NCBI RefSeq assembly: GCF_000737315.1
Contig: NZ_JMCB01000008.1
Span: 248,001-312,000 of the forward strand
From: Hyalangium minutum
GTDB lineage: Bacteria; Myxococcota; Myxococcia; Myxococcales; Myxococcaceae
Direction of reading: 5' to 3'
Length of the DNA stretch: 64,000 nucleotides
Shown here: one piece after another, positions 15,132-55,397 of the stretch
Numbering within the stretch: position 1 is the first letter of the stretch
How the letters are laid out: every line of letters begins with the position of its first letter
Notes under the pieces: model-generated
Told to the model about the DNA's origin: nothing
Seen by the model: only the letters and a program-made list of their open reading frames with translations
Databases searched by the model: none
Translations under genes and position numbers: made by a program

Positions 15132-15139
15132 TCTGTAAG

Positions 15140-15158: not shown

Positions 15159-15243
15159 TTTATTTTGGAACTCCAGGCTGTCCGGAATTGAGCGTCAGCG
15201 GAGGAAAGGTCGACGACTCCCGGCAGGCGCGTAAGGTGGGCGC

Positions 15244-15903: not shown

Positions 15904-15921
15904 GACACGTCCCAGCCGCGC

Positions 15922-17298: not shown

Positions 17299-17314
17299 GG
17301 CAGCAGATCCTGGT

Positions 17315-17548: not shown

Positions 17549-17555
17549 GCCCTGT

Positions 17556-26564: not shown

Positions 26565-26674
26565 GGGGAGCCGCACGGTGTGACAGGTGCATGGGCACCC
26601 GGAGCGGCCCCTTTCTGGCGCCCTACCCGCCTCCCAGAGTAGGGTCCCTGACGCCCTACCCGTCAGGAGGCCTC

Positions 26675-28649: not shown

Positions 28650-28670
28650 GGCCTCCATTTAGCGCGGGGG

Positions 28671-34354: not shown

Positions 34355-34413
34355 GGCCTGGCGGCGCGGCATGGCTCGAGCCTGTCTGCTTGTCTGACAG
34401 GTTGGGCCAGACC

Positions 34414-36839: not shown

Positions 36840-36860
36840 GGCGCCTCCATCATCTCCCAG

Positions 36861-38618: not shown

Positions 38619-38699
38619 GTTGCTCCTTCCCTCTCGGTGACGGGAACAGTACGAATCCAGGGCGTCGCCGTGGGTAACCCGAACGTAACGAGCACGGCC

Positions 38700-39185
38700 G
38701 CTCCCAGACTGCTCGCGAGGGACCTCTTCTCGGATCCGAGCGCGAATATGCGCGGCGCCTCGGGGGATGTGAGAAGCGTCTGGAACGCTTTCGCTTCCCA
38801 GTTCCGCTGGGTGGCGGGCGTGGCGGGCAACCACGACACCTTCGGCACGTCTCGCGAGCGCGAACGGTTCCTCCAGCAGCCCGGCCTCTACCTGATGGAC
38901 GGCGAGGTGCATGAGGTGGATGGGCTTCGGCTCGGCGGCGTCAGCGGCATCATTGGCCGGACGGACAAGCCAGGGCGGCGCGCCGAAGCGGATCAACTGA
39001 AGCGCATCCAGGGCGTGCTGCGCCAGGAGCCAGAGGTCCTCGTCCTGCACGAAGGCCCCGACTTTCCTCCAGGGGACCTCCGAGACAACTCCGCCATTCG
39101 TGAAGCCGTCGAAGCACGGGAAGAACTGCTCGTCGTCTGTGTGCTCAACGTCGACGCTCGCGCCGTGCTCCTGGTCAAGGCCTGA
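38700..39185 (+). pseudogene. Metallophosphoesterase fragment
   Basis: RDLFS..RGASGDV, VAGNHD, LVLHEGP present; N-terminus and final GHxH motif absent (VVCVLNVD). Confidence 0.6.
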
Positions 39186-39711
39186 CCGCGTTGCTGGCTT
39201 TGCTTCGGTGCAGGCCGTAGATGCGCAGTTCGAGCCCATGGAACGCCCATGTGCGCTCGAACGTCTCGCCCAGCCGCTCGGCGACGCGGATGGAGAGAGC
39301 GTTCTCCGGGTGAATGACGCTGATGAGGTGGTCCACGCCCAGGACTCGAAACGCGGCGTTGATGGAGGCTCGGCCTGCCTCGCTCGCGAAGCCCCGTCCC
39401 CAGCACGCCCGGTGCAGCATCCATCCCACTTCGAGCTCTGGCCATCCCTCGGGCTTCCAGAGCCCCACCCGGCCGATCAGCTTCCCCGAGGCCTTCTCCT
39501 CGACGGCCCACATGCCGTAGCCCCGGAGCTGCCAGTGCCCCAAGTGGGTGGCGATGACACGCCACGTTCCCGCCCGGTCCAGCGGCTTGAACTCGCCGAT
39601 GAAGCGCATCACCTCCGGGTCCGCGCAGATCTCCGCGAACGCGTCGAGATCCGACTCCCGGAACTGCCGGAGGATGAGACGCTCCGTCTCCATTTCCAGC
39701 GGCATCGCCAT
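39175..39711 (-). CDS. GNAT family N-acetyltransferase (RimJ/RimL-like)
   Basis: ETERLILR, LEVGWML..WGRGFASEA, ENALSIRVAERLG. Confidence 0.88.
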   Translation of the reverse strand: MAMPLEMETERLILRQFRESDLDAFAEICADPEVMRFIGEFKPLDRAGTWRVIATHLGHWQLRGYGMWAVEEKASGKLIGRVGLWKPEGWPELEVGWMLHRACWGRGFASEAGRASINAAFRVLGVDHLISVIHPENALSIRVAERLGETFERTWAFHGLELRIYGLHRSKASNAVRP

Positions 39712-39757
39712 GGCGTTCTCCCTATGTCCTGCGTGAACCCCGTCGCCGACGGGGTGC

Positions 39758-41362
39758 TCAGTCTCGGGCCGCGACGGCCATCACCGTCTGGGCCTTTGGC
39801 AGCTCCACGTCGAAGCGGGCCCCTCCGGTTTCCGCGCGCCCGGCGGTGATTCGCCCGCTGTGCCGCTCCACGATTCCCCGCGCAATGGCCAGCCCCAGCC
39901 CCGTCCCCGGTCTCGGTCCCTCGCGCTTTCGGCCCGTCACGAACGGCTGGAACAAGCGTGGCAACAGCTCGGGTGCGATGCCCGGCCCATTGTCCTCGAC
40001 CACCACTCGCACCCGTTCTCCCTCCTGGGAGCACGTCACTCGCAGCTTCTGGGATGGCACCTCCCGCAGCGCCAGCAATGCGTTCTCGAAGAGCACCACC
40101 AGCACCTGGGACAGCTGTGCTTGATCTGCTTCCAGCTCGATCGCCTCTCCGTCCGGCTGCTCGAAAACCACCTCCGGCGCCAACGCTCCCAGTCCCTGCC
40201 GCGCTGTCGAGTACGCCAGCGCCACCGTGGCCCGCAGATCCACCTTGCGCAGCTCCAGCGGCCTCGGGCGGCCGTAGCGGAGGAGCTCGCCCACGAAGTG
40301 GCTCGCTCGATCAATCTGCTCTCTCATCGCCGCGATGGCCTCGGGATCCGTCCCCTTGCGCTCCAGCAGCTTCAGGTGCGCCCCAAGCACCCCCAGCGGG
40401 TTGCGCACCTCGTGGGCCACCGCCGACGTGAACTGTCCCAGCTCCGCCAGCCGCGCCGCCTGGTCCGCCCGCTCCTCCTGCTTCACCAGCTCCTCGGCCA
40501 GCTCGCTCGCCGCCGCGCGGCCCTTGATCAGCCGCCGGCCGAGCCACTCCTGGAAGCCTTGCCGCACCGGCTCGAAGGCCAACGCCGCCAGCGCCAGCAG
40601 GAAGAACGCTCCCACCCGGTACTCCCTGAGGTAGGGCTCTCCGCTCCCCGCCATCAGCGTCAACACCCCGAACAGGAACCCCGCTGACAGCACCGCCGCC
40701 AGCGCCGAGTACAACAGGCTGCGCTCCAGCAGCCGCCGCTCACTCTCCGCCTGGAGCCCGCCAATCACCTGCGCCAACACCAGCAGCCCGCCCAACACCA
40801 GGTACATGCCGAACGGCAGCGCGTACCCTCCCGAGAGCAACGTCGCGTTCGTGATGCCTCCCAAGTAGGTGAGCACCCCGGCGATGCCCACTCCTCGCAT
40901 CAAGGGCCGCCGCTCGGGAGGTGCCACCCGGTACTCGCGCACCAGGTGCACCAGCGGCACCGTCATCGCCACCACCGCCAGGCCCATCGCCGGCCAAAAC
41001 AGGGGGCCTCGGGTCATCGCCAACGGCCCGTAGAGGACATTGGGCTCCACCACGCCCAGCACCGTGAGCCCCAGCGCCACGAAGTACGCGAAGACCACCA
41101 GCCGGTACGAGCGCTGCCCCGTCACGTTGTACGCCGCGTGGAGAAAGCCCGCGGCCGTGAACGTTCCCACTGACACGAGGCGCTCGCCCAGCCACGCCGT
41201 GCGCGGCATGCACAGCATCAGCAGCGTGCCGCTCCAGGCCGCCACCGTCAGGCAGTACAAGGCCAGCCCTCGCGCGTTCCGCGCACGCAGCGAGGCGGTG
41301 AAGCACAGCAGCAGCGCCACCGAGAGCACTGGCACGAGGCTGTAGGCGAAGAGGGGCCCCAT
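39758..41362 (-). CDS. Multi-TM sensor histidine kinase
   Basis: About 8 TM helices, AHEVRNPL, FENA, DNGPG, GTGLGL. Confidence 0.88.
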   Translation of the reverse strand: MGPLFAYSLVPVLSVALLLCFTASLRARNARGLALYCLTVAAWSGTLLMLCMPRTAWLGERLVSVGTFTAAGFLHAAYNVTGQRSYRLVVFAYFVALGLTVLGVVEPNVLYGPLAMTRGPLFWPAMGLAVVAMTVPLVHLVREYRVAPPERRPLMRGVGIAGVLTYLGGITNATLLSGGYALPFGMYLVLGGLLVLAQVIGGLQAESERRLLERSLLYSALAAVLSAGFLFGVLTLMAGSGEPYLREYRVGAFFLLALAALAFEPVRQGFQEWLGRRLIKGRAAASELAEELVKQEERADQAARLAELGQFTSAVAHEVRNPLGVLGAHLKLLERKGTDPEAIAAMREQIDRASHFVGELLRYGRPRPLELRKVDLRATVALAYSTARQGLGALAPEVVFEQPDGEAIELEADQAQLSQVLVVLFENALLALREVPSQKLRVTCSQEGERVRVVVEDNGPGIAPELLPRLFQPFVTGRKREGPRPGTGLGLAIARGIVERHSGRITAGRAETGGARFDVELPKAQTVMAVAARD

Positions 41363-41395
41363 TTCCCGGCCACTTTGACAGAACCCGCGCCGGTG

Positions 41396-42061
41396 TCAGC
41401 CCGCCGCGAGCAGCCCCTCCGTCACTTCCTCCACGCTCGAGGCCACCGACTGGAGCAGCTCCACCAGCTCCGCGTCCGGCCGCCCCGCGAACTTCAAGAG
41501 CTGCAGCCGCGAGCCCATTTCCTCCAACTGCAACACCACCCGCTCCAGGTCCGCCGCCGTCCGCTCCCGCATCGCCACCAGCCGCTCCATGTTGCGCAGC
41601 CGCGCCTGGACGCTCTGCACCCGCGCGTCCTCCGGTGGCAGCCCGCGCCGCGCCAGCGACTCCAGCTGCTCGGAGGCCGCCGCCCGATCGAACTCGGGCG
41701 TGGCCAACAGCCTGTCCATCTCCGCCACCCGCGCCTCCATCTTCCCCACCGCGTCCACCAGCCCGCGCAACCGCGCCACCTCGGGGCGCAGCACGTCCGC
41801 CGCGAGCCCCTCCACCTGGCTCAGCGCCCCCACCAGCCGCTCCCTCGCGGCCCGGGCCGGAGGCGTCACCGCGGCCGTGGGACTGGCGCGCGCCGGAGCC
41901 AGCAGGAACGGCGCGTACACGGGCCAGAAGAACACGCCGCTCACGAAGGTGACGGCCCGCTCGCCGGGGCTTCGGCCCTCGGCCCGGAGCACGAGCGCCA
42001 CCGCCACCACACCGCCCAGCAGCAAATACAGGATGCAGGTCTCGACGACGCCCATGGCCAA
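41396..42061 (-). CDS. Hypothetical membrane-anchored coiled-coil protein
   Basis: Two N-terminal TM helices, long helical C-terminus. Confidence 0.65.
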   Translation of the reverse strand: MAMGVVETCILYLLLGGVVAVALVLRAEGRSPGERAVTFVSGVFFWPVYAPFLLAPARASPTAAVTPPARAARERLVGALSQVEGLAADVLRPEVARLRGLVDAVGKMEARVAEMDRLLATPEFDRAAASEQLESLARRGLPPEDARVQSVQARLRNMERLVAMRERTAADLERVVLQLEEMGSRLQLLKFAGRPDAELVELLQSVASSVEEVTEGLLAAG

Positions 42062-42068
42062 GCCCTCC

Positions 42069-42806
42069 TCACAGGTATGCGCCGAGCGCCTCGCCCAGCC
42101 GGTACAGCGCCACCGGCGCCACCACGCTGTAGACGCCGCCCCAGCACAGCACGAGCCGCTTCAGGAAGTTGCCCCGCCGCTTGTGGGTGATGGGCAAGTG
42201 CTCGGCCAAGTCACAGAAGCCCCGGTACACGGCCCGGATGCCCCACAGCCCCACGCCGAACGGCAGGCACAGGCCCGCGAAGAGCGCGGTGCCCGGCTCG
42301 TCGAACACGCCCACCACCGTCCCCAGCAGCCACGCCGCGTAGAACGGGAGCACGCCCAGCAGCAGCACGGACATGGTCGCCTGGGCTCGCAGCGCCTGCG
42401 CCGTCACCACCCGGAACGAGGCGTCCAGCCCCGACAGCTGCGTATAGAAGTAGAAGGACGGCAGGCAGATGCACAGCGCCCCGAGGAAGGCGCCTATCAA
42501 CGCCAGCGGCATCCACACCACTGGGTTCCCCGCCTGGTACCAGGCCAGCGAGGTGTCCGGCTCGAACATCCCTGCGGCCAGTCCCAGCACCACTCCATGA
42601 ATGGTGAGCCCCAGCACCGAGAGCGCGAGGAGCTTCTGAATCACTTCGGGCAGCCCCGCCTCGTCTCGCATCAGGCGGTGGAGGCGCGTCTCTCCGCGCA
42701 GGATGAGATCGAACATCCCCGGCACAGGCCCGGGACTGGGCACGGGGTCCGGCTTGAGCTCGGGAGCTGGGAGCACAGGAACATCGAGGGTCGAAGCAGC
42801 GTCCAT
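42069..42806 (-). CDS. Hypothetical polytopic membrane protein
   Basis: About 5 TM segments; CLPSFYFY motif resembling the neighbouring gene. Confidence 0.65.
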   Translation of the reverse strand: MDAASTLDVPVLPAPELKPDPVPSPGPVPGMFDLILRGETRLHRLMRDEAGLPEVIQKLLALSVLGLTIHGVVLGLAAGMFEPDTSLAWYQAGNPVVWMPLALIGAFLGALCICLPSFYFYTQLSGLDASFRVVTAQALRAQATMSVLLLGVLPFYAAWLLGTVVGVFDEPGTALFAGLCLPFGVGLWGIRAVYRGFCDLAEHLPITHKRRGNFLKRLVLCWGGVYSVVAPVALYRLGEALGAYL

Positions 42807-42821
42807 GGCAGCCTCCAGCGC

Positions 42822-43430
42822 TCAGGCGTCGAAGTGGAAGAGGGAGAAGAGCGTCATCAGCTCCGCGCCGATGACACCCACCAGGGCCAGCCAGAGCGTG
42901 GCGTAGGCGCGGCTGCGCTCGGGCTCGAGCGCCTTCATGGTCCGCAGGAATACGTCCACCATGCACACGCCCACGCCCGCGAACACGGTGAGGTTCACCG
43001 CCAGCCGCACGAGGCCGTACGGGAGCGCCAGCCCGAAGAACCAGGTGATGGGGATGCTCGCCAAGAGCGCCAGCGAGCCGAAGCTCACCGTGGAGAGCGC
43101 CGCCAGCAGTGTGGTGGACGCGTCCAGCTTCGAGCCCAGCGCCGAGTTGAGGATGTAGAGCGCCGGCAGCGCGAGCGTCCACGCCAGCCCCGCAGCCACC
43201 GGGGCCTTGAGCAGCCCCGCCAGCATCCCGCCCCAGCCCTCGTGCAGCCTCATCACCAGCCCGTAAGCGGCGATGCCCAGCACCGCGCACATCAACAGCA
43301 CGGGGAAGACAATCGGGTTCGGGCCAGGGGCCAGTCGGCGATCCCTCCAGCGCGTGGTAAACTCCTCGGGTCGGCGCAGCGCCACGCCCACCTCGTGGAG
43401 GGCGGTGCTCAAATCACGGCTCAGGCTCAT
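42822..43430 (-). CDS. Hypothetical polytopic membrane protein
   Basis: About 5 TM segments; ALPALYIL..LG and SIPITWFF motifs. Confidence 0.65.
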   Translation of the reverse strand: MSLSRDLSTALHEVGVALRRPEEFTTRWRDRRLAPGPNPIVFPVLLMCAVLGIAAYGLVMRLHEGWGGMLAGLLKAPVAAGLAWTLALPALYILNSALGSKLDASTTLLAALSTVSFGSLALLASIPITWFFGLALPYGLVRLAVNLTVFAGVGVCMVDVFLRTMKALEPERSRAYATLWLALVGVIGAELMTLFSLFHFDA

Positions 43431-43459
43431 GGGGTGTTCCTCCTCTGCCTCACCCCCTG

Positions 43460-43475
43460 AGCACCCGCCGTGCCA
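43460..43475 (-). promoter_or_regulatory. Sigma54 -24/-12 promoter
   Basis: Minus strand TGGCACGGCGGGTGCT, 29 nt upstream of the ATG at 43430; one base different from the rtcB promoter. Confidence 0.75.
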
Positions 43476-43699
43476 TGAGCCCCAGGGCCTCGAATCACGG
43501 GGTTGGCGCCGCCGCTGTCACCGCCGTTGACGGTGGATGACACCGCGCTTGACGCCTGCACGCCCCGCCACCAGGGAGACAGAAGCGGACCGGCGGATCG
43601 CCTCTGTTCCCGTTCACATCCGGACATTCTGGTCCAAGCCATCCCGGCTAATGCCGCTCAGGGGTAGCGACTCGGATGGGGGGCTGCCGCGCCTGCGGA

Positions 43700-44065
43700 T
43701 GCGGCGCAGCAGGCCGACGGCCTCAGGCCAGCCGAAGCCATGGCGCCGCAGCACCTCGCCCCCCCAGTCAAGGCTGATGTGTACGCCCGCGTGCTGCTCG
43801 AGGTGCACGGCAAGACGCGCGCACGTCCAGCGCGCGAAGGCGTAGCCCTGCTGTCGCGGGTCTCTCTCCATGGCCTTGAGGAGCAACTCCACCGCCGTAG
43901 ATGTCAGCGGGACGGTCGACCCGGATGTGGACGGGCCTCCAGCAACTGGCCACCCTCTTGGCGCCACCTTCGGCGCCATGCGTGCACCGCCCGAGGAATG
44001 CCCCCAGGGTTTTACCCACCTAGCCAGCGCTCTGGCCGCCGGCCAACAACAGAAGGGCTGAAGCG
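43700..44065 (-). mobile_element. IS630-like transposase relic (HTH/winged-HTH part, frameshifted)
   Basis: ALLLLAGGQSAG*VGKTLG, then in another frame ERDPRQQGYAFARWTCARLAVHLEQHAGVHIS...LRRHGF; no DDE domain or intact ORF. Confidence 0.6.
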
Positions 44066-44291
44066 CGCGGTGCCACTCCCTGCTGCTCGTGCGGCGGACC
44101 AGTCCTGCCAGGGAGCGCTGCTCCCCCGGCAGTCAGATGCACTACTTGGCCGGACCTCCTTCGGCGTACGCTGCTCACCACTGTCGCAGCGTACCCCTAA
44201 ACGAAATTACTTCGCTTGGCTTAGCTGCCCCTCCTTTGCCTCTCTGCACCAGCCCACCGCCCAGTAAGAGTGCTCCCATTCCGCCTATACT

Positions 44292-45452
44292 TTAAGGCGC
44301 GCTCGGCGCGGGCGGCAGATAGTTCTGTGTCGAGCGAGCGGATGCAGGCGAAGGACAGAAGTGACGGAAGTCACAGGCATCGCACGTCGCATCGTCTCCA
44401 CCGGCAGGCCAGTGGGCAACTATCGTCCCGTGCTGCGCTTCACGTGCGACGCACGACTCGATGTTGACGACGACGTTATCGAAAGCGCCAACGGCGGCAT
44501 CGATGCTCGGCTGGGTGATGGGGACAATCCGGATCGCCCGCTGCAACCTGAAGGCCGCCGAGAATGAGGGAACGGCGGCCCCAGGGCGCCATGTCCGCAG
44601 TTGATAATCGTCCGGCGAGCCCGAAAGAGGCCGTACATCCGTGCGCCCCTGGTTGACCTCTCGCTGGAGCTGACTGATTCCCGACGGAGCGAGCTCGTTG
44701 ATGTAGAGCAGAACTCCCGCCACGACAGGAGCGGCGCCCGGCTGCCGGGACCGGAGCCAGGCGTACATCTGCAATTGCCAGTCGCCTTGGGTCCAGTACT
44801 CATCATCCAGGGCGGGCCGCCGCGAGCCTTTGTAGTCGACGATGATCTCAGCGCCAGCAGGCAGGTTCGGCACGGCGGCACGGACCGCGTTGCAGATCAT
44901 ATTATTCGTCGTGGCGGTCACCGTCACGGACGACAGCACGTCCATGATTCCGTGAAGCTCGTACATCTGGGCGCGCGCCCGTGCCCCTTGCGGCATGGTG
45001 AGCGAGCGCGTACCGATGACCCGCTCCTCCGCGGAACGGATGAGCGGGAACAGCTCGGGACCGATCTCGTTGACCGCCCGCTCGGCCCGTTCGTACGCGG
45101 ACTCGCGCAAGTTCCTGCTTCGTGGGCTCTTTCCCGCTGCGGCGAGCGTTGCCTCGACCAGGTCCCCGATTGTGCCAATATCGTTCGCGGCACGGTTCGG
45201 AGCTGGGCTGGTGTTATAGGGAGTCGGCGTACAGGGCCAGGGGAAGGGCGGGTGGCTGGCTAGCCAGGTCCGGTACGCCGTCTCCATCACGCCGTGGATG
45301 AACTCGCCGAACCACATCTGGACAGGTCGGGAGGGCGGTAGAGCGCTGCCGTTTTGATAGCGGTACTGTAGCCCGCACCTCATGAATGAGAGCAGATCTC
45401 CCGTAAGCGAGTAGTTGGGAACGAGCTCGGGCTCTCGGCGTTGTTGAAGCAT
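44292..45452 (-). CDS. PD-(D/E)XK nuclease, RecB/AddB/Cas4-like, with 4-Cys Fe-S signature
   Basis: N-terminal FMRCGLQYRY, FGEFIHG, HGIMDV, IVDYKG, QLQMYAWL, C-terminal CDACDFRHFC. Confidence 0.85.
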   Translation of the reverse strand: MLQQRREPELVPNYSLTGDLLSFMRCGLQYRYQNGSALPPSRPVQMWFGEFIHGVMETAYRTWLASHPPFPWPCTPTPYNTSPAPNRAANDIGTIGDLVEATLAAAGKSPRSRNLRESAYERAERAVNEIGPELFPLIRSAEERVIGTRSLTMPQGARARAQMYELHGIMDVLSSVTVTATTNNMICNAVRAAVPNLPAGAEIIVDYKGSRRPALDDEYWTQGDWQLQMYAWLRSRQPGAAPVVAGVLLYINELAPSGISQLQREVNQGRTDVRPLSGSPDDYQLRTWRPGAAVPSFSAAFRLQRAIRIVPITQPSIDAAVGAFDNVVVNIESCVAREAQHGTIVAHWPAGGDDATCDACDFRHFCPSPASARSTQNYLPPAPSAP

Positions 45453-47917
45453 CAGATCAGCTCCAGCGGGATGTTGTTCGCCTGCGGAGGATGGCGTCGG
45501 CCCGAGTACGGAGTCCTCCAGGCCCAGGTGCCGTCGGCCCTCCAGAAGGTGGCGGTATGGCGGATGCTCGTCGAGTACTGCAGGCAGGTGTCCAGGCCAA
45601 CGAGAAGCAACGCGGACTGAGGCCGACTGTAGGCGACATAGTAGAGACGGATCAGATCATCGAAGGTGCGTTGCAGGGCGGTGCGTTGCAAACGGAGCGT
45701 GCCAACGGAGCAGGGCTGGGACAGATCATCCTCCAGGTGAGTGACATTGCTCGGCTGGTCGGGGAATCGCCGGAACCGGGTCTTCGCATGGTTGGTCTTG
45801 AAGTCCGAGCCGACGTCCACGATGACCAGGGGAAACTCAAGCCCCTTGGCTTGATGGATTGTCATCATCGCGAAGCGATCCCGGGGTATGCTTGGCATGA
45901 TCTCTTCATCGACGTCGATCGAACTCTCGGCGATGGGAGCGAAGATGTCTCGTAGGGCGTTCTCCACGCTGATGCGATCGTGCTGCCCTGAACCGTGAAG
46001 CACCAACGCGCGGTAGGGCGAGAACGTCGCCGATTGCGAGATGGCGCGGGTCACCGCCTCCAAGTGCACCTGCCCCTCGGGGTCATCGCGCAGGCTTGGG
46101 AACCAAGCAAGGAGCGTGAAACAGAGCTCTAGGATCGGCCACTCACGCGGCCACGGTTTGCCAGACTGAGACTGACGGCGCCCCCAGGCCATGACGAAGG
46201 CAGACAGGTCATGTGGTTGCACTGGCGGAGGGTTCGTGCCGGCATACTGAGTGTAGGCGACGCGAAATGAGCCCAGATACTGCTGGGCCTCGCCGCGCAG
46301 GCGCATTGTGCTCTGCAACGCCGATCCAGGATCTAGGCACTCCAGCATCGCTCCCAACAACTGCTGGATCACGGGAATGTCGCGGAGCGCTTGCCCTCGT
46401 GGGTTGAAAACGCCGACGTTCCTTGAGGCCAACTCCCGCCGAAGCTGATGAGGAAGCCGGGCCCGGGGAGTCGAGCCCATGAACCCCGAGGTGAACTCGT
46501 TCACGGAGTGCGCTAGGAGCACAGCATCGCCGAAGTCTCCTCCCTGAGGTGCTTTGGCTACGGTCACCGGCCCCATGGCTCCGCTAACGACACGTCCATT
46601 TCCACGGAACACGTCATGGAGGAAGGCAGCGAGGTGCGTCGCCAGTGTCGGGACATCTGACCGGAACATGCCCAGCACCCGCGCTCCGTTGGAAGGGAGA
46701 TGGGCCTGTATCGCCGGTTTGGGAGGCTGGACGCGTGCGGGCGAGAAGTCAGGATCGTTAACGATGAAGGAGTTGAAGAAGGAGACGATCTCGGGCGTGG
46801 AGCGGTAGTTCGCGATGAGATCCAGTCGCTGCGCGGCGACGTTGGGCACCACGGTGGCGAGCCGCGTCCGAAAATCCCGGAAGAGTTCCACTGTGGCGCC
46901 GCGGAACCGGTACAGGGACTGATCGTCATCACCCACAACCGACAGGGACGCGTTGGATCGCCGGAAGAGCTCGAAGTAGATGCTCTCTTGGAGGAGGTTG
47001 GTGTCCTGGTACTCGTCCACAAGAATGGCACGGACGACATCCGTGAAGCGCGCAAGGCGTCCAGTCCGTAGCCGCTCAAGAAAGGCCTGCTCAAGTAGGG
47101 CGAAGTCCAGGCGGTTGGTGTCCCGCAGGTGCTGCACATAGGCGCCATATCCCCGGACCAGCAGGGCGCGGGCCCCGGTGTGCGTCGGCAGTGTCTGGAA
47201 GGTGGGGAGGTCGATGATGTCGTGCGCGAAGCGATCGAAGATCGGGCGCACGCTGCGGATGAGTTCCCCCACATTCCCCGGGGCAGTGCCGTCAAAAGTG
47301 AAGTTCGCGAGGTAGCCGGCGACTGCGGGATCGATCGTACCGGTGTTGTAGACCGTGTTGGTGAGGCCGCGGCGGTGCATGAGCGCATCCGCCGCGAACC
47401 CCTCGAGCAGGGCGGGAGCAGGGTCCGTGGCCACGCGCAGCGTGCGCAACGCGTCCTCACACAAACTGTCGAGAGTTCCCGTCACGAAACGGTTGACGTC
47501 AACTTGGGCTAGGTGAGGTTGCAGTTGGGAAGGACCGTGCTGCCGCAGATAGCCCACCAACTGGAGCCCCCACTCGATGAGCCGGGTGCGAATCTCCGCC
47601 GCAGCCTTCTTCGTGAACGTGGTAAGCAGCACATGCTCGGGCAGAAGACCGTCGACGATGACGAGCCGGAGTGCCCGGAGCACAAGCACGGTTGTCTTAC
47701 CGCTGCCTGGACCCGCGACAATCTGAAGAGGCGTCGCGGGAGGGTGGAGAATGCACGCCTCCTGCTGTGCATCCGGTGCGGGAAGACGGCCTGGCTGTGG
47801 CCGGAACCGGGGAATCGCGAAGCGGATGGCAGGGATGAAGTCTGTGATGGGCAGCAAGGCAGGAGATCGGCGTGAGAGGTGCGCGAAGGCACGGAAGTCG
47901 TCCTGATTATGACACAC
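45452..47917 (-). CDS. UvrD/Rep-family SF1A DNA helicase
   Basis: AGPGSGKT, TFTKKAA, VDEYQD, GDDDQSLYRFRGA, NYRST, MTIHQAKGLEF, YVAYSRP; true start may be TTG 47857. Confidence 0.92.
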   Translation of the reverse strand: MCHNQDDFRAFAHLSRRSPALLPITDFIPAIRFAIPRFRPQPGRLPAPDAQQEACILHPPATPLQIVAGPGSGKTTVLVLRALRLVIVDGLLPEHVLLTTFTKKAAAEIRTRLIEWGLQLVGYLRQHGPSQLQPHLAQVDVNRFVTGTLDSLCEDALRTLRVATDPAPALLEGFAADALMHRRGLTNTVYNTGTIDPAVAGYLANFTFDGTAPGNVGELIRSVRPIFDRFAHDIIDLPTFQTLPTHTGARALLVRGYGAYVQHLRDTNRLDFALLEQAFLERLRTGRLARFTDVVRAILVDEYQDTNLLQESIYFELFRRSNASLSVVGDDDQSLYRFRGATVELFRDFRTRLATVVPNVAAQRLDLIANYRSTPEIVSFFNSFIVNDPDFSPARVQPPKPAIQAHLPSNGARVLGMFRSDVPTLATHLAAFLHDVFRGNGRVVSGAMGPVTVAKAPQGGDFGDAVLLAHSVNEFTSGFMGSTPRARLPHQLRRELASRNVGVFNPRGQALRDIPVIQQLLGAMLECLDPGSALQSTMRLRGEAQQYLGSFRVAYTQYAGTNPPPVQPHDLSAFVMAWGRRQSQSGKPWPREWPILELCFTLLAWFPSLRDDPEGQVHLEAVTRAISQSATFSPYRALVLHGSGQHDRISVENALRDIFAPIAESSIDVDEEIMPSIPRDRFAMMTIHQAKGLEFPLVIVDVGSDFKTNHAKTRFRRFPDQPSNVTHLEDDLSQPCSVGTLRLQRTALQRTFDDLIRLYYVAYSRPQSALLLVGLDTCLQYSTSIRHTATFWRADGTWAWRTPYSGRRHPPQANNIPLELI

Positions 47918-47999
47918 TCAGGCAGGCAACCACTGAGTCTAATTAGTCTGCGCTCCCGCTCGGGGCCGCCAGCCCCGTGCAGCCAGGAGTTCACGTCCC

Positions 48000-48863
48000 G
48001 TGCGGTACTTCATCATGGTCGCAGCCGGAGCCGCCCTCTGGGGCTTCTGGCCGCTCTTCCTGCACCCGGCTGGCCTCTCCGGTGTCCAGAACGCGTTTCT
48101 CGCCATGGCCACCATGGCGTTGATCTCGCCCTTCCTCCTGCGGCGCGAGTCCCTGAAGGACCGACGGGCCACGCGGGCGCTCGTCCTCATGGGGGTGGCG
48201 GACGCCCTCAACGTGGCCCTCGTCTTCGCCGCCGTGAAGCGTGGCCCCGTGGCCATCGCCATCCTCACGCACTACCTGGCGCCCCTGCTGGTGGCGCTGA
48301 CGGCGCCCTGGGTCATCCGCGAGCGCCGCTCCCTGCGGGCCCTCATCGGCGCTCCCCTCACCTCACTGGGCCTGGGCATGCTCATCTGGAAGCCGGGCGA
48401 GGACTTCTCCGGGTGGACGGCGGTGCTCGGCGGCGCCAGCGCCATCTTCTTCGCCGCCACCGTCTTCTGCGCGAAGGAGGCCGCGCGGGCCTGGTCTCCC
48501 ATCGCCGTCACCTCCGTTCACTCCGCAGTGGGCGCGCTCACCCTGCTGATCCTCTTCAGGGGCAGCGCCCTGCCTCCCATCGAGGTGCCCGTGCTGTGGG
48601 TGCTCGCGGGCGGCGTGGTGAGCGGGCTGATCGGCAACGTCCTCTTCAACCAGGGCATGCGGCACATCCCCACCTCCACCACGGGCGCGCTCACCTACCT
48701 GGAGCCCCTCACCGCCACCGTGCTCGGGTGGCTCGTCTTCCACGAGGCGCTCGGCCTCTGGGGCCTGCTGGGAGGAATCCTCGTCCTGACCGTGGGGGTC
48801 TGGGTCGCAACGGAGCCCCGCACCTTGGGTTCGCCTTTACCATCAATTTCTGGTACTCCTTGA
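48000..48863 (+). CDS. DMT/EamA family transporter
   Basis: About 10 TM helices, two EamA repeats, LTYLEP motif. Confidence 0.85.
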   Translation: MRYFIMVAAGAALWGFWPLFLHPAGLSGVQNAFLAMATMALISPFLLRRESLKDRRATRALVLMGVADALNVALVFAAVKRGPVAIAILTHYLAPLLVALTAPWVIRERRSLRALIGAPLTSLGLGMLIWKPGEDFSGWTAVLGGASAIFFAATVFCAKEAARAWSPIAVTSVHSAVGALTLLILFRGSALPPIEVPVLWVLAGGVVSGLIGNVLFNQGMRHIPTSTTGALTYLEPLTATVLGWLVFHEALGLWGLLGGILVLTVGVWVATEPRTLGSPLPSISGTP

Positions 48864-48934
48864 ATCCCGAAGCTCCCTGTTATGTAGTATTAGAGGGTTT
48901 ATTCTAGGAGACCCTCTCTTCCACGTCGTGCCGT

Positions 48935-49492
48935 ATGGAACCCTCCGTCGACAGCCGGGACTATCGCGTCCTCTTCTTCTGCCCCGCCTCCCACGCCCGT
49001 GTGGAGCGCATCGAGGCGCCCGTCCGTCGGCTGCTGTCTCGCATCCAGGCGCCTCCGGCGGATCTGGTGCAGCTCGAGGAGGCCGGCACGCTGAACGAGG
49101 CCGGGTGGAAGGTCTTCATGGTGCGCTCGATCGGTGAGCGCTCCGCAGCCCACGCGCTGGCGGCGTACGTGAGCGAGGTGACGTGCTCGCTCGCCGCGGA
49201 GCTGGATGCGGAGGTGCTCGGGCTCTACATCGACGTGACGGGAGACTCGGCGCGCATCTGCCGGTGTGGCCCGGAGGACGGGCCGGAGACGTTCGCGGGC
49301 CGCCGCCACGTGGCGCTGGGCCGCACCGCTGAGTGGCTCGAGGTGTCGCCGGCCGCTCTCTCGGCCCTCTTCCAGGTGGACATGCCGGACGACTACGAGC
49401 CGGACGCCGAAGACAGGTACGTGGAGCAGAAGCTGCGCGAGGCCCGCGAGTTCATGGAGCAGTACCGGCGGGGGAACAAGATCAGCACATGA
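48935..49492 (+). CDS. Hypothetical protein
   Basis: 185-aa ORF with host-like codon bias between two + strand genes. Confidence 0.6.
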   Translation: MEPSVDSRDYRVLFFCPASHARVERIEAPVRRLLSRIQAPPADLVQLEEAGTLNEAGWKVFMVRSIGERSAAHALAAYVSEVTCSLAAELDAEVLGLYIDVTGDSARICRCGPEDGPETFAGRRHVALGRTAEWLEVSPAALSALFQVDMPDDYEPDAEDRYVEQKLREAREFMEQYRRGNKIST

Positions 49493-49508
49493 GGTACATG
49501 CTTCGGGC

Positions 49509-50090
49509 ATGAGGTCTCGTACCCCGCCGGATCTCGCGGGCCGCTGCCCGCGGTGTTACCTGCCCACGCGGCTGTGCCTGTGCGCGCAGGTGCCGCAGTT
49601 GGACACGCGCACCGAGTTCCTCGTCATCCGGCACAACAAGGAGAAGGAGAAGTCCACCAACACGGTGCGGGTGGCGGCGCTCGCGCTGGTGCGCTGTCAG
49701 GTGCTCACGTACGGGGCGCCCGGCGAGCGGTTCGACGCCTCGGTGCTCGAGAGCCCCGACACCTGGCTGCTCTTCCCGGACACGCAGCCGCCCGAGCCCC
49801 AGGCGCCTCCGCCCAAGCGGCTCATCGTGTTGGATGGGAACTGGGGACAGGCGCGCCGCATGGTCCAGCGCCTGCCCGCGCTGCGGAAGATGCCGGGCCT
49901 GGCGCTGCCTCCTCCTCCGCCAAACACGCGCCGGCTGCGCCGCCCGCCCAACCCGGACGGCATGTCCACGCTGGAGGCCATGGCCGGAGCCGTGGCGCTG
50001 CTTGAGGGCGAGGAGCTAGCCCGGCAGCTCTACGCGCTGCACGAGCTGATGATCGACCGGGTGATGGAGAGCCGCGGGCGGCTCGGGTAG
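49509..50090 (+). CDS. DTW-domain tRNA-uridine aminocarboxypropyltransferase
   Basis: RCPRC..LCLC, HNKE..KSTNT, DTWLLFP, LDGNW, MSTLEA. Confidence 0.88.
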   Translation: MRSRTPPDLAGRCPRCYLPTRLCLCAQVPQLDTRTEFLVIRHNKEKEKSTNTVRVAALALVRCQVLTYGAPGERFDASVLESPDTWLLFPDTQPPEPQAPPPKRLIVLDGNWGQARRMVQRLPALRKMPGLALPPPPPNTRRLRRPPNPDGMSTLEAMAGAVALLEGEELARQLYALHELMIDRVMESRGRLG

Positions 50091-50105
50091 CAGCGGCCGG
50101 GAGGC

Positions 50106-51515
50106 TCAGCGGACCTTCTTGAGCTCCTCGGCGAACGGCCGGGGCTCCAGGAAGCCGGTGACGCGGGGGTTCTTGAGAATCTCTCCGCCGGAGGACACGA
50201 AGGCCACGGTGGGCAGCCCCTGCACGCCGAAGCGCTCCATGAGCACATCGAGCGCGTCCTCGCTGTTAGTCGCGTCGATCTTGATGTTGAAGAAGCGCTC
50301 CGACTCGGAGATGACCTCGGGGGCCGGGTAGGTCTCCCGGTCCAGCTCCTTACAGGCCGCGCACCAGTCCGCGAAGAAGTCGATCATCACCGGCTTGCCG
50401 GCGGCGCGCGCCGAGGCGAGGGCCTTCTCGAACTCCTCGGTCGAGAAGGTGGCCTGCTTGGCGGGCATGACATGGTGCCATTCAAAGGTCGGCGCCTTGG
50501 GCAGCTCCATCCAGCCGAGCTTCACCCAGAGGGCTCCAGCGGGAGTGGTGTCCATCACACCGATGCGGACGGTGATGGCGATCACGACGAGGGCCACGCC
50601 CACGGCCTTGATGACGAACTCGCGCGATCCGGACTTGAACGAGAGGTGAATGGCGCCCACGAGCACGCCCAGCGCCGCGAACGCCCCCGCGAGGAGCGCG
50701 CCCGGCGTGCGCCCGAGCTGCGCCGCCGCCGCCTTCACCGTGTCGCGGGCCCACGGGAACGCATCCCGCAGGTAAGAGATGGCAAGCGCTACCAGGACGA
50801 TGCCCAGCACGCTCTTCACCCACTCCATCCACACGCCGCCGCGAGGCAGGCGCACGGTGAAGACGCCGATGAGGAAGAAGGGCACGCCGATGCCCAGCGC
50901 GTAGACAAAGAGGAGCGCCGCGCCCAGGCCGGTGTTCGCCGTCTTCGCCACGAACGCGAGCAGGCCGGTGAGCACGGGGCCGGTGCACGGCGCTGCGAGG
51001 AACCCGGACACGCTGCCCATGAGGAACGCGCCCGCCACGCCCGCGCCTCCCACGGTGGTCAGCCGCTGCTGCATGCTCGAAGGGAGCGCCAGCTCGAAGG
51101 CGCCGAACATGGAGGTGGCAAGCACCAGGAGGAACACCGCCAACCCCGTCACCACGGCAGGGTTGCCCAGCATGGAACCGAAGGCCTGCCCCGTCTTGGC
51201 CGCCAGCACCCCGAGCGCGCTGAACACCACGCCCATGCCGATGATGTACGAGGACGTGAGGACCAGCGCCTTCGCCCGCCCCTCGGCCTTCCGAGCGCCG
51301 AAGACAGAGACGGTGATGGGAATGAGCGGGTAGACGCAAGGCGTCATCGCCGTGAGGAGGCCGCCGAGAAAAACGACAGCGGCCCCCGTCAGCAAGCTGC
51401 CGGAGGCCAGGAACTGCGTCGCATCCAGCCCGAGCCCTGGGCCGGTGGGCATGAGCCAGGGGACCACCACCACGGCGATGCCGCACACTGCGGCGAGAAT
51501 CCCAACCTTCTTCAC
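50106..51515 (-). CDS. DsbD/CcdA-like disulfide reductase with C-terminal thioredoxin domain
   Basis: TPCVYPLIP, APCTGP, DFFADWCAACK. Confidence 0.9.
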   Translation of the reverse strand: MKKVGILAAVCGIAVVVVPWLMPTGPGLGLDATQFLASGSLLTGAAVVFLGGLLTAMTPCVYPLIPITVSVFGARKAEGRAKALVLTSSYIIGMGVVFSALGVLAAKTGQAFGSMLGNPAVVTGLAVFLLVLATSMFGAFELALPSSMQQRLTTVGGAGVAGAFLMGSVSGFLAAPCTGPVLTGLLAFVAKTANTGLGAALLFVYALGIGVPFFLIGVFTVRLPRGGVWMEWVKSVLGIVLVALAISYLRDAFPWARDTVKAAAAQLGRTPGALLAGAFAALGVLVGAIHLSFKSGSREFVIKAVGVALVVIAITVRIGVMDTTPAGALWVKLGWMELPKAPTFEWHHVMPAKQATFSTEEFEKALASARAAGKPVMIDFFADWCAACKELDRETYPAPEVISESERFFNIKIDATNSEDALDVLMERFGVQGLPTVAFVSSGGEILKNPRVTGFLEPRPFAEELKKVR

Positions 51516-51572
51516 GGCTGACGTACCTCCTGTGCCTCCCGCCCTCCTTATATACGCCAGACCGAGGGCCGG

Positions 51573-53363
51573 TTACTGCGGCTGCTGGGCGGGGGTGGGA
51601 ATCTTCAGGCCCGCAGAACGCGCGAGCCCCATCACCCCTTCCACCGCCGCGGCGATGTAGCCGAACGGATTGGCACCATCCACGGCGGTGACGTGGACCT
51701 CGCCCATCTTCTGTTGGAAGGCGGCCGCCACCTGGGGGAGCTGGTTGGCGAGCGTCATCTGGATGACCTCTGGGCTCAGCGTGTTCTCGATCTCGCGCAT
51801 CGTCCGGGCGCGCTGGAGTTCCAGCTCCTGCGTCACGGTGAGCTTCTTCGTCTCGAACTCGGCGATGGCCAGCTCCGCCTCGGCGATGGCGCGGCGGGCC
51901 TGAGCCACCTGCACCTGGGCCTTGAGCCGCTCCACCTCCTGCATCGTCGTCGCCAGTTGGCCCTCGTGCCGGGCGGCAGCGGCCTCCTGCTCGTTCCGGA
52001 TGCGCTCCATCTCGGCCTGCTGCTCCTGGCGCATGCGCTCCAGGGCGGCCTCGGCCTGCGTGACGGCCATCTGGCGCTCGTGGGCGAGTTGGGCCTCGGA
52101 CAGGGCGCGGTCGTGGGCAAGCTTCGCCTCGGCCATGCGCGCCTCGCTGGCCAGTTGTTCCATCTTCGCGGCCTCATCGGCCTCCTCGCGGCGCTTGCGC
52201 AGCTCCAGCTCGGCGTTCAGCTTGCTGAGGGACAGCTCGCGCTCGGCGTTGGCCTGACCCTGCTTGAGGTTGCGCTCCTGGAGGAGCTTCGCCTCGGCCA
52301 ACCGCGCCTCGGTGGCGAGCAACTCCAGCTTCGCGGACTCGTCGGCCTGCTGCTTGCGCTGGCGGACCTCGTATTCCGCGTTGAGCTTGCTCAGGGTGAC
52401 TTCGCGCTCGGTGGCCACCTGCCCCTGCTTGAGGGCGCGCTCCTGGGCGAGCCGGGCCTCGGTGACACGGGCCTCGGAGGACAGCTCCTCGAGCCGGGCC
52501 TGCTCCTCGGTGACGGTGCGCTTCTGGCGGACCTCCTCGTCTGCGGCGAGCTTCGTCAGGGCGATGGCGCGCTCGGCCTCGGCCTCCTCGCGCCGGAGGA
52601 AGCGCTCCTTGGCCAGCTCCGCCTCGCGGGCCTGCCGCTCCTGCTCGCGGCGATAGCGGGCCTGCATGTTCTCGAAGACGGTGGAGCTGAGCACCCGGAC
52701 GTCTTGAATCTCGATGGTGTCGATGACGACGCCCCAGCCGGCGTCCGTGCTGTCATCGAGTCGGCCGCGGCCAGAGACCACGGGGGCAATCTCTCGCATC
52801 AACTCGGTGGCGATGCCCTCCTTGCGCTTGGTGAGGCACTCCTCCACGGAGAGGTTGGCCACCAGGCGGCGGGCGGCACCGACGAACATCTCACGCAGCA
52901 GGCCCTGCAACTTCTCGGAGGCGCGCTCCGGGAAGGAGAAGTTCAGCATCCGGAACGCCACCAGCGGATCCACGATGCGGTACACCGCGAGGCCCGTCAC
53001 TGACACGCCGACCTTCTCGCTCGTCACCTGGTCCGCGGTGAACTGGAGCCGCTGCACGCTGGTGGGGACGATGGCCACCGCGTCGCCGGGGAACTTGAAG
53101 CAGCTGGCGCCCTGGCCGGAGACCTCCCGGACGCGGCCGCGGCGCATGTGGATGAGGAACTCACTGGGGCGCGCGGTGATGAGGCCCCACTTCTTCATCT
53201 TCTCGGGGTCCTCCTCCGGCTTGCCAGCCCGCCAGCCATGCTCGTAGCGCGTGCCATTCAGGTCGTTGGAAGCCCCCTCGGACACCAACTGCATCCGCGT
53301 CTCGGTGCCGTTGACCCCATTGCTGCTGCCGCTCATCCGGTTCCGCTTCTCGCTGGCGCTCAT
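51573..53363 (-). CDS. SPFH/flotillin-like protein with long repetitive coiled coil
   Basis: WGLITARPSEFLIH, FTADQVTSEK, IDTIEIQDV; AEA-rich repeats; start uncertain. Confidence 0.75.
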   Translation of the reverse strand: MSASEKRNRMSGSSNGVNGTETRMQLVSEGASNDLNGTRYEHGWRAGKPEEDPEKMKKWGLITARPSEFLIHMRRGRVREVSGQGASCFKFPGDAVAIVPTSVQRLQFTADQVTSEKVGVSVTGLAVYRIVDPLVAFRMLNFSFPERASEKLQGLLREMFVGAARRLVANLSVEECLTKRKEGIATELMREIAPVVSGRGRLDDSTDAGWGVVIDTIEIQDVRVLSSTVFENMQARYRREQERQAREAELAKERFLRREEAEAERAIALTKLAADEEVRQKRTVTEEQARLEELSSEARVTEARLAQERALKQGQVATEREVTLSKLNAEYEVRQRKQQADESAKLELLATEARLAEAKLLQERNLKQGQANAERELSLSKLNAELELRKRREEADEAAKMEQLASEARMAEAKLAHDRALSEAQLAHERQMAVTQAEAALERMRQEQQAEMERIRNEQEAAAARHEGQLATTMQEVERLKAQVQVAQARRAIAEAELAIAEFETKKLTVTQELELQRARTMREIENTLSPEVIQMTLANQLPQVAAAFQQKMGEVHVTAVDGANPFGYIAAAVEGVMGLARSAGLKIPTPAQQPQ

Positions 53364-53570
53364 GTGTTCGCCCTCCGTGCCGAGGCACAGTGCAGAGATG
53401 CGGCCAAGTCCCAGTTTACGTGGTTCCAGGCACTTACCGGATGCGGGTGTTCCAATCTGGAGCGGCTGCCTCGGAACAGGGCAGGAGCAGGCGCTCCAGA
53501 CTGGAGCGATTCCGACAGGTTGAGCCAAGGTGGCCCATGGCAGTCTGTGAGTACCTCCTCTTACCCAGGA

Positions 53571-54086
53571 CTACGGAGCAAAGGGGTAGCGCGCCAGGAC
53601 CTTGCCCTCGGGGGAGACGGCGTACAGTTCTGCCCAATCCGTCTCAAGGCTGAAACCTTCAGGCACAACCCACCCGCACTTATCCATCCGCTGGTTGATG
53701 CGGACGATGTACATGCCTCCTCCTTCGCCTACGACAACCTCTAGTCCCTTGGGCGAGTAGCCGCACCCCTTGGAACCCTCCTTTTCGAACCGTGCCAACA
53801 GGGCCTGAAGGGCAGCATGCGCCGCCAGGACTGCAGGGGCATCCAGCGTCGTCAGCAGACGTACATCTTCGGGCCAGCGAACGCCCCCGGCGATGATGGG
53901 CTTGCGCGCAGGGACTCCTGCATTTGACCGTGAACTGACCGGTGAGACACCCTCCATTCCCGCGTCAGGGCTGGCCGGAGTCGTACCAGTGGTTCCTGCA
54001 TCCAGTCCCCCAAGACTGGGCTGGGGAGTTCCTGCTCCGCCCCCTCCCAGGAGCGACAAGAGCAACAAGAACGGATGAAGTCTCAT
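53571..54086 (-). CDS. Exported hypothetical protein (paralog 2; candidate immunity)
   Basis: Signal peptide; GGVRWPE...CGYSPKG...DKCGW...ELYAVSPEGKVLARYP. Confidence 0.7.
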   Translation of the reverse strand: MRLHPFLLLLSLLGGGGAGTPQPSLGGLDAGTTGTTPASPDAGMEGVSPVSSRSNAGVPARKPIIAGGVRWPEDVRLLTTLDAPAVLAAHAALQALLARFEKEGSKGCGYSPKGLEVVVGEGGGMYIVRINQRMDKCGWVVPEGFSLETDWAELYAVSPEGKVLARYPFAP

Positions 54087-54148
54087 CAGGCGGCTGTCCT
54101 CATGCGAGGTTTTGATACCAATCGGCCAGTCCGATCAAGAAGCACCTT

Positions 54149-54802
54149 TCAACCTTTCCCAGACTCAATTCTTGCCCAGGCCTCATTCAACTCGCGAGTA
54201 ATCTCCACAGCCAACTCCTTGAGTCTCGGCCCAAGCGAATCCACCTTATCCGGGTGATACATCAACAGCAGTTTATGATACGCTTTTTTAGCCTCAGCCT
54301 TGGGAGTTCCTTTAGGCACACCAAGAACATCCCAAGGTGTCCGAACTTTGCGCCGTTCCTTCTCATCATCAGCGGAGGCGGTGCTCGCCTTACCCTTCTT
54401 TTCATTACCAGTTTTCTTGTTACCGCTTCGAGACTGGCGAGTTCCTTCGCGCTCTTTATCACCGCGCGCTGAACGACCTCCCCTTGCCGCCTGTTCAGGC
54501 TCTGCATCTACCGAAAAAACGAGAACATACTTCCCGATCCAAACCTCATCCGAAGGCCTTAATGGTGTCCACGCGGTAACCCGCTTACCGTTCACATAGG
54601 TTCCATTGGTTGAGCCCGAGTCCCCCACCATCAACTTGCCTCCGGCAAAGAGCACTCGACAATGCTCCTTGGAGACATTGTTTTGCTTCAAGATCACATC
54701 ATTCTCAGCAGCACGGCCAATCACAATCTCATGCCGCTGAAAGGCTCTCTCAATACTCCGTGCGCCTCCTATTGTCCCCACTCGGACGCGGATTCCGGAC
54801 AT
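54149..54802 (-). CDS. FHA domain + C-terminal J-domain protein
   Basis: IGR..NDV..VSKEH, DSGSTNGTYVNG; PWDVLGV..AYHKLLLMYHPDK; AT-rich. Confidence 0.85.
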   Translation of the reverse strand: MSGIRVRVGTIGGARSIERAFQRHEIVIGRAAENDVILKQNNVSKEHCRVLFAGGKLMVGDSGSTNGTYVNGKRVTAWTPLRPSDEVWIGKYVLVFSVDAEPEQAARGGRSARGDKEREGTRQSRSGNKKTGNEKKGKASTASADDEKERRKVRTPWDVLGVPKGTPKAEAKKAYHKLLLMYHPDKVDSLGPRLKELAVEITRELNEAWARIESGKG

Positions 54803-54858
54803 ATTCACCTCATCGCTTCATGCACCATGAACACTCTTTCTTCCACTCCGCCTTCGAA

Positions 54859-55374: not shown

Positions 55375-55397
55375 GAAAGTGCTCCAAGGGACTAACA

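Follow-up and report, generated by a model that had tools for sequence, protein, structure and literature searches.

The window analyzed here is a 64,000-nucleotide stretch of the Hyalangium minutum genome (contig NZ_JMCB01000008.1, positions 248,001 to 312,000), and it carries two overlapping minus-strand genes that encode a UvrD-like superfamily 1A (SF1A) helicase and a stand-alone iron-sulfur (Fe-S) PD-(D/E)XK nuclease. Comparison with related loci suggests that this pair is probably an alternative restriction module of Dpd-type 7-deazaguanine restriction-modification (R-M) systems, with the window copy as an orphan, an explanation that we hold with moderate confidence. A preliminary description of these genes, made from the sequence alone, had proposed a self-contained and previously undescribed two-gene defense system. 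Its picture of a horizontally acquired helicase-nuclease pair agrees with our results, which also show that the two genes are co-inherited and that relatives elsewhere reside in defense-rich contexts, but the idea of a free-standing system is not supported, because across phyla the pair is attached to named Dpd machinery recognized by PADLOC (DpdA, DpdB and DpdC), and a DpdA-family gene lies within 10 kb of it in 59 of 80 loci.

Linkage to DNA Deazaguanine Modification Genes

The Dpd R-M system, encoded by dpdA-K of Salmonella Montevideo, was reportedly described by Thiaville in 2016 and by Yuan in 2018. In this system, DpdA and the ATPase DpdB swap guanine for preQ0 in DNA, DpdC converts the inserted base to dADG, and DpdD-K confer restriction by a mechanism that is unresolved (PMC10164549, PMC5699537). 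In Salmonella, DpdA depends on DpdB for its activity (PMC10164549).

Homologs of the helicase-nuclease pair were found at 79 loci in a collection of 185,579 species genomes. Open reading frames (ORFs) were called and clustered in these loci and in the window, and the context counts given here thus refer to 80 loci. Upstream of the helicase gene and on the same strand, 37 loci encode a DpdC-DpdA fusion of approximately 580 amino acids (aa), which directly adjoins the helicase in 32 loci and is separated from it by an insert of 0.5-3.8 kb in 5 more. At 18 loci the pair lies beside a dpdC-dpdB-dpdA-que cluster holding a DpdA protein of approximately 430 aa, and 18 pair-bearing loci also have two or three copies of DpdB. 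The 430-aa protein matches the PADLOC DpdA model at 1e-156, and the 580-aa fusion matches it at 2e-98 and carries the Pfam domains DUF6884 (DpdC) and TGT (DpdA). Other PADLOC matches in these loci include DpdB (5e-130) and DpdC (1e-77), as well as DpdD and DpdJ. The genes surrounding DpdA also include QueC, QueD, QueE, a YhhQ-type transporter and a HAD hydrolase. Pair homologs are therefore linked to bona fide DpdA, DpdB, DpdC and preQ0-synthesis genes, and they resemble Dpd systems further in residing on patchy, horizontally transferred islands that combine a modification module with helicase and nuclease genes.

Only about 6 loci carry canonical Dpd restriction genes (DpdD, DpdJ). Among 122 further neighboring ORFs no family recurs comparably; HerA-like ATPases are found in 7, and the rest are heterogeneous. 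The contexts that we examined individually are rich in defense and mobile-element genes, and they include TIR, DUF499/DUF1156, toxin-antitoxin pairs, HerA, relaxase, coupling protein, recombinases and insertion sequences. No dpd genes occur in 21 loci, of which 9 are cut by contig ends. Genome mining has revealed dpd islands that lack a restriction operon, including those of Archangium and Acidovorax (PMC11888242), and both of these are represented in our locus set with a helicase-nuclease pair.

Distribution and Co-inheritance of the Pair

The nuclease has more than 1,368 homolog clusters, and among the matches listed its identity between phyla is unusually high (55-80%), with values for the helicase family that run parallel. 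Across the 79 loci, which represent more than 15 phyla, nuclease identity to the window protein ranges from 44 to 94%. These loci derive from Myxococcota, Planctomycetota, Bacillota, Acidobacteriota, Chloroflexota, Latescibacterota and Poribacteria, and also from Alpha-, Beta- and Gammaproteobacteria, Cyanobacteria, Nitrospirota and other phyla. This very patchy distribution is of the kind that horizontal transfer produces. Neither phages nor plasmids are the usual carriers of the gene family, since the INPHARED phage collection yielded no match, IMG/VR yielded one matching contig, and only 3 of 72,556 plasmid records carry the family.

Helicase and nuclease genes are adjacent in essentially all 80 loci, and the pairwise distances of the two proteins correlate (r = 0.81), so that the two genes can be regarded as a unit that is inherited together. 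Two tandem copies of the pair are present in a Planctomycetia genome (locus L021, 7586-14377). In Nannocystis exedens (L011, 6268-11167), three ORFs make up the split helicase gene, which is probably a pseudogene.

The Helicase and Nuclease Genes

The helicase gene (45452..47917, minus strand) encodes 821 aa when counted from the GTG at 47917. An in-frame TTG at 47857 would yield 801 aa and fits both the N-terminus of the family (MIPLxDFIP) and its usual length of 795-812 aa, and thus the TTG is likely to be the true start. A Pfam scan matched the ORF to UvrD-helicase at 3.8e-43 (148.6 bits, cut-off 23), as well as to AAA_19 and UvrD_C. All helicase motifs (GPGSGKT, VDEYQD, GDDDQSLYRFRGA, TIHQAKGLEF and YVAYSR) are intact, and the columns of Walker A GPGSGKT (47693..47713), motif II VDEYQD (47003-47020), motif III (46895-46933), motif V (45833-45862) and motif VI (45623-45640), all on the minus strand, are invariant in the helicase-family alignment. 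The AlphaFold2 model of the helicase has a predicted local distance difference test score (pLDDT) of 88.6, and its best Foldseek matches are UvrD (E 1e-25), PcrA, Rep, AddA, RecB and AdnB, with AddA, RecB and AdnB matched in their motor domains. Both the invariant motifs and the fold place the protein in the UvrD/Rep/PcrA group of SF1A helicases.

The nuclease gene (44292..45452, minus strand) encodes a 386-aa protein of the AddB/Cas4 type that matches Pfam PDDEXK_1 at 1.9e-12, exceeding the gathering score. Its catalytic IVDYKG motif (D205 and K207; 44826..44843), YELHGIMDV (44937-44963) and QLQMY (44763-44777) are invariant in family alignments. Four cysteines are predicted to bind the Fe-S cluster, three in the C-terminal CxxCx5C motif (CDACDFRHFC, 44355..44384) and the fourth near the N-terminus (Cys26, inside 45363-45383). 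Across 64 homologs, D170, D205, K207, Q225 and Y229 are invariant, as are C25, C356, C359 and C365 (numbered by the 385-aa alignment query). In the AlphaFold2 model, the core reaches pLDDT values above 90, and Foldseek pairs it best with the nuclease domain of AddB (4cei_B, E 2.5e-4) and next with AddA, MGME1 and Exo5; a sequence search of the PDB with the nuclease gave no match. The catalytic and cysteine motifs, the PDDEXK_1 match and the AddB fold together assign the protein to the RecB-family Fe-S PD-(D/E)XK nucleases of the AddB/Cas4/Dna2/Exo5 type.

Two parts of the nuclease stand out by their conservation across the 64 sequences, namely its first approximately 45 residues (45318-45452) and a C-terminal APxAP tail (44295..44309, with P382 and P385 invariant), and these are also the lowest-confidence regions of its AlphaFold2 model. 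Such ends would suit partner binding or Fe-S-dependent folding, and the APxAP tail is possibly a docking peptide.

The two genes meet in a TGATG overlap (45450..45454) in which the TGA of the helicase and the ATG of the nuclease share base 45452, and the overlap reads ctgatcTGATGctt directly from the sequence. Most related loci have the same overlap or a gap of at most 10 nucleotides. The G+C content at third codon positions (GC3) is 0.75 in both genes versus 0.85-0.95 in flanking genes, and overall G+C content is 0.633 for the pair versus 0.676 for the window. Hence the preliminary description was correct in its account of an intact SF1A helicase, a RecB/AddB/Cas4-type nuclease of roughly 386 aa, a stop/start overlap between them and a codon bias less extreme than that of neighboring genes, and only the start codon of the helicase had to be corrected as uncertain.

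Relationship to Known Systems

Scans of the pair with PADLOC, NCBIfam and Pfam models identified no named system beyond generic similarity to GajB and Cas4. For the helicase, the best 25 of 51 PADLOC matches are GajB and RTasHel, with no Dpd model among the matches listed. For the nuclease, only weak Cas4 matches were obtained, and PADLOC v2 has no model for this protein. As the preliminary description had stated, the pair therefore fits none of AddAB/AdnAB, Gabija and CRISPR Cas4. With AddAB, AdnAB and RecBCD it shares the combination of an SF1A UvrD-like motor and a RecB-family nuclease, as well as the AddB-type arrangement of four Fe-S cysteines. However, its motor (approximately 800 aa) and nuclease are separate chains, there is no second, inactive helicase lobe, and the pair is sporadic and mobile in contrast to the vertically inherited housekeeping AddAB. 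Moreover, the helicase scores 126.7 bits with the NCBIfam addA_Gpos model, whose cut-off is 707.65, and no AddB model recognizes the nuclease. Gabija is likewise a two-gene module with a UvrD-family helicase, and GajB gives the best PADLOC helicase matches (1.7e-31), but these cover only the generic helicase core, and the nuclease of the pair is a PD-(D/E)XK Fe-S enzyme rather than an ATPase-TOPRIM protein. No GajA gene adjoins the helicase, whose neighbors are the PD-(D/E)XK nuclease, an insertion sequence relic and eamA. CRISPR Cas4 belongs to the same nuclease superfamily and has the same pattern of cysteine ligands, but the window nuclease is twice as long, scores 16.2 bits with TIGR00372 against a cut-off of 65, and has no cas domains in the flanking genes that were scanned. 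The window pair also differs from canonical Dpd systems: no dpdA, dpdB or dpdC gene is present in the 64 kb, and the pair is not homologous to DpdD-K (SNF2, DEAD/YprA and PLD proteins), which its relatives usually replace. In addition, many pair loci use a DpdC-DpdA fusion without DpdB.

Combinations of UvrD-like helicases and Cas4-like nucleases have been noted before. UvrD-Cas4 fusions are found together with type III R-M or Dcm/Vsr genes (Hudaiberdiev et al. 2017, PMC5704561), a context that differs from the DpdA context seen here. An operon of unfused UvrD and Cas4-like genes, found mostly in Clostridiales, was thought not to be defense-related, and no deazaguanine link was made (PMC5704561). 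This operon joins a pfam12705 Cas4-like nuclease to a UvrD-like helicase, and our set includes Clostridiales and Pelotomaculum; it may be the same family as the present pair. Full-text literature searches returned no description of a UvrD/Cas4-like module linked to dpdA or residing in Dpd islands, and what appears to be new is the UvrD/AddB-like pair as a variant of a known, Dpd-type R-M system.

A repair role has been suggested for the unfused operons (Hudaiberdiev et al. 2017, PMC5704561), and an analogous function could apply here. The helicase might provide ATP-driven opening of DNA as DpdB does in Salmonella, and intermediates of base exchange that are nicked or abasic might be substrates of the nuclease, in which case orphan copies would be generic AddAB-like helicase-nucleases for repair or recombination. 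Consistent with this scenario are the fusion-bearing operons without DpdB, the AddB-like fold of the nuclease and the UvrD/AddA-like fold of the helicase, and DpdA is known to need an ATPase, for which a helicase-like activity has been speculated (Gedara et al. 2023, PMC10164549). Nevertheless, we consider such an accessory role quite unlikely. The 18 loci with two or three DpdB copies hold these besides the pair, the distribution is extremely patchy and indicative of horizontal transfer, unlike that of repair genes, and the window pair is carried on an insertion beside an insertion sequence relic. Furthermore, the pair is the only non-modification component in most loci, and without it these R-M-like islands would have no restriction candidate.

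Insertion and History of the Window Copy

The window carries an insertion of approximately 4.4 kb (43554..47943) that comprises an insertion sequence relic, a spacer, the nuclease and the helicase, as can be concluded from the empty site in a close relative that is represented by a metagenome contig (L094). This contig is collinear with the window on both sides of the insertion at approximately 90% nucleotide identity (L094 5608-9929 corresponds to window 39198-43553, and 9947-15848 of the contig to window 47944-53906). The insertion lies between a gene for a 202-aa protein (42822-43430) and eamA (48000-48863), which in L094 are separated by merely 190 nucleotides or so. Within it, a 121-aa ORF (43614..43979, minus strand) is a truncated IS630-type transposase relic, since it retains only the N-terminal helix-turn-helix domains (Pfam HTH_33 at 5.3e-8, and HTH_32).

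A second copy of the cassette is present in Corallococcus aberystwythensis, which shares the cassette alone (window 47928..44292, 87.4% nucleotide identity) within unrelated flanks. It is the only copy that we found in Corallococcus, and transposases lie nearby. There is no evidence that one insertion sequence carried both copies, because no similarity to the window relic could be detected in the IS630-type transposase that neighbors the C. aberystwythensis copy. A search for repeats on both sides of the pair revealed no convincing terminal inverted or direct repeats that would bound a transposon, and alignment of the insertion junctions shows only a partial repeat of target sequence. The insertion brought the pair together with an IS630-type element and without any dpd or que genes. 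Both the relic beside the pair and its horizontal acquisition, which the preliminary description had proposed, are thus substantiated, the latter by the empty site in L094 and by homology to C. aberystwythensis that is confined to the cassette.

It is conceivable that the window copy is a non-functional remnant, i.e., a piece of a Dpd island that insertion sequence activity left behind and that is now decaying. The window has no partner genes, a truncated transposase adjoins the pair, and in N. exedens the helicase is split. However, both window ORFs are intact and every catalytic motif is present, and comparison with the C. aberystwythensis copy gives ratios of nonsynonymous to synonymous substitution rates (dN/dS) of 0.089 (helicase) and 0.059 (nuclease), with dS being approximately 0.52. 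The cassette is therefore kept under strong purifying selection, and decay is a highly improbable explanation. The window pair is a horizontally acquired, recently inserted and probably functional cassette of defense type, as judged from these sequence comparisons.

Searches (tblastn) of the 64-kb window with all cluster members of DpdA, DpdB, DpdC, QueC, QueD, QueE, DpdD and DpdJ gave no match, and within this stretch the copy is an orphan of the larger Dpd-linked system. In the nuclease tree it groups with the C. aberystwythensis copy and with orphans of Archangium and Nannocystis, and the same group includes loci from Fimbriimonas and from a Myxococcota metagenome-assembled genome that both have dpdC-dpdA-dpdB next door. 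Orphan pairs are polyphyletic in this tree. A Corallococcus DpdA was sought among homologs of a myxobacterial DpdA, and none was named among the best 120 matches, although this does not prove its absence.

Additional Genes at Related Loci

Several other observations were made at loci that carry the pair. No DpdB gene was found within 10 kb of the DpdC-DpdA fusions (e.g., L013 5839-7584, and 36 others), and the literature that could be searched yielded no description of fusions of DpdC (DUF6884) to DpdA (TGT). In Latescibacterota and Poribacteria, a protein of approximately 633 aa with no Pfam match and a HerA-like (DUF87) ATPase of approximately 608 aa recur together between the fusion and the helicase or just upstream (L031 3822-7546; L033, L049 and L058; and, at about 3900-5900, L027 and L029), and these loci may represent a five-gene extended variant. 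At 10 or more loci (including L013 4838-5791, L016, L034, L038, L042, L060, L068, L073 and L075), several of which also encode a HAD-family hydrolase, a protein of approximately 320-350 aa with no match in Pfam or PADLOC lies beside either the pair or the dpd genes. In Sorangium (L007), a HAD hydrolase gene and a DprA-like gene precede an orphan pair. Finally, a 38-kb plasmid of Picosynechococcus sp. PCC 73109 (NZ_CP014001, L091) has a copy of the pair and a tRNA-guanine-transglycosylase (TGT)-like gene. The latter is flanked by two DEAD/DEAH helicase genes (13147-18718), with PIN and AbiEii toxin-antitoxin modules around them, and may belong to a different TGT-based defense module.

Other Features of the Window

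A 450-aa protein with a C-terminal AHH nuclease domain of the HNH/EndoVII superfamily is encoded at 28671-30023 (minus strand) and is followed by an Imm11 immunity protein (28086-28658, minus strand), the two constituting a polymorphic toxin-immunity pair (28086-30023). This pair is located in a stretch, at approximately 24-30 kb in the window, with a GC3 of 0.76-0.81, below that of the rest of the window, and a Ser/Thr kinase gene is found at 26561-28084. A second region that varies relative to L094 extends from 34358 to 39198 (L094 1962-5608); the window genes in this region are ORFs 34414-36288, 36135-36839 and 36861-39239, and those of L094 encode a PatA_N protein, a 460-aa protein and an acetyltransferase. 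A low-G+C patch is located at 53900-56100 (G+C content 0.57 at 54-56 kb), where identity to the relative falls from approximately 90% to 70-74%, and it holds an FHA-DnaJ protein gene (54149-54808, minus strand) and several ORFs without a Pfam match.

Discussion

In the explanation we favor, the helicase would be a 3'-5' SF1A motor of the UvrD type that is paired with a separately encoded AddB-type Fe-S nuclease of the RecB family, and the two would constitute a co-evolving machine that is functionally like a split, minimal AddA/AddB. DpdA, with DpdC, would place dPreQ0/dADG marks on host DNA; the helicase would then load onto DNA and translocate with ATP, and the nuclease would degrade DNA that is unmarked. 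The fusion, helicase and nuclease genes, which share one strand, form an apparent three-gene operon in most fusion cases, and the pair usually stands in place of the canonical dpdD-K restriction genes. Assignment of the restriction half to the pair draws on this same-strand gene order, the replacement of dpdD-K, the invariant nuclease site and the behavior of the genes with respect to defense islands and horizontal transfer. We infer that helicase and nuclease form a complex that restricts unmodified DNA with a corresponding phage or plasmid phenotype, and attack on phage or plasmid DNA had also been supposed in the preliminary description. In the window, the modification genes may be elsewhere in the genome, or the orphan effector may act without them, for example only on DNA ends. 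A role as a type IV, modification-dependent restriction enzyme was also considered, and it was rejected because in 32 loci the pair is directly downstream, on the same strand, of a DpdC-DpdA fusion that modifies self DNA.

A more specific proposal is that fusion, helicase and nuclease make up a minimal three-gene deazaguanine R-M system in which the helicase-nuclease reads 7-deazaguanine, and not a sequence, as "self," the mark serving as a Chi-like stop or inhibitory signal. We offer this proposal only tentatively and consider it doubtful in this detailed form. Such an enzyme needs an entry point, for example a DNA end, and orphans could therefore be tolerated by their hosts and still protect against linear invading DNA.

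Several observations weigh against assigning the pair to the restriction half of Dpd systems. The 64-kb window has no dpd or que gene, and orphan pairs recur in Corallococcus, Archangium, Polyangium, Bradyrhizobium and Leptospiraceae. Conversely, myxobacterial dpdA-dpdB loci without the pair exist, and thus the modification and helicase-nuclease halves can be unlinked. Nuclease distances correlate with those of DpdA at only r = 0.49. DpdB is absent at fusion loci, and there the helicase could therefore serve the modification reaction rather than restriction. Most importantly, orphans are kept under purifying selection, which is awkward for an enzyme that attacks unmodified self DNA, and this is the main observation that is not easily explained. 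Because orphans persist in this manner, two rival explanations stay alive, namely the role in modification or repair discussed above and a form of defense that is independent of modification.

In this second rival, the complex itself would sense and degrade foreign DNA by recognizing free ends, replication intermediates or nicks, in a mode such as that proposed for Gabija or Hachiman, and linkage to dpd genes would reflect clustering in defense islands or synergy rather than functional dependence. In its favor, orphan pairs are intact, under strong purifying selection and recurrent in several phyla, some of the orphan loci are situated among TIR and other defense genes, and the cassette moved alone between the genomes of H. 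minutum and C. aberystwythensis. Moreover, co-evolution is tighter between helicase and nuclease than with DpdA (r 0.81 versus 0.49). We nevertheless judge this scenario to be rather unlikely, as DpdA lies within 10 kb in 59 of 80 loci and no other defense family is as recurrent among the 122 neighboring ORFs. In addition, in 32 loci the fusion gene immediately precedes the helicase gene in the same orientation with very little spacing, which is the signature of an operon and not of loose clustering.

These findings are of value chiefly for the link to Dpd systems across genomes and for the minimal three-gene architecture, and less for the window copy, which is no new kind of system. Canonical Dpd restriction needs eight proteins (DpdD-K) that are poorly understood, and the nuclease responsible for it is yet to be established. 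If the pair is indeed an alternative restriction module, then one SF1A helicase and one Fe-S nuclease would make up the whole restriction side, and 37 of the 80 loci also have a marking side cut down to a single DpdC-DpdA fusion. The three-gene form would thus be a model for asking how the 7-deazaguanine mark is sensed. Our results add a helicase-nuclease family not modeled by PADLOC v2 to the genes associated with defense, and they show that effector modules of this kind move alone and persist as orphans.

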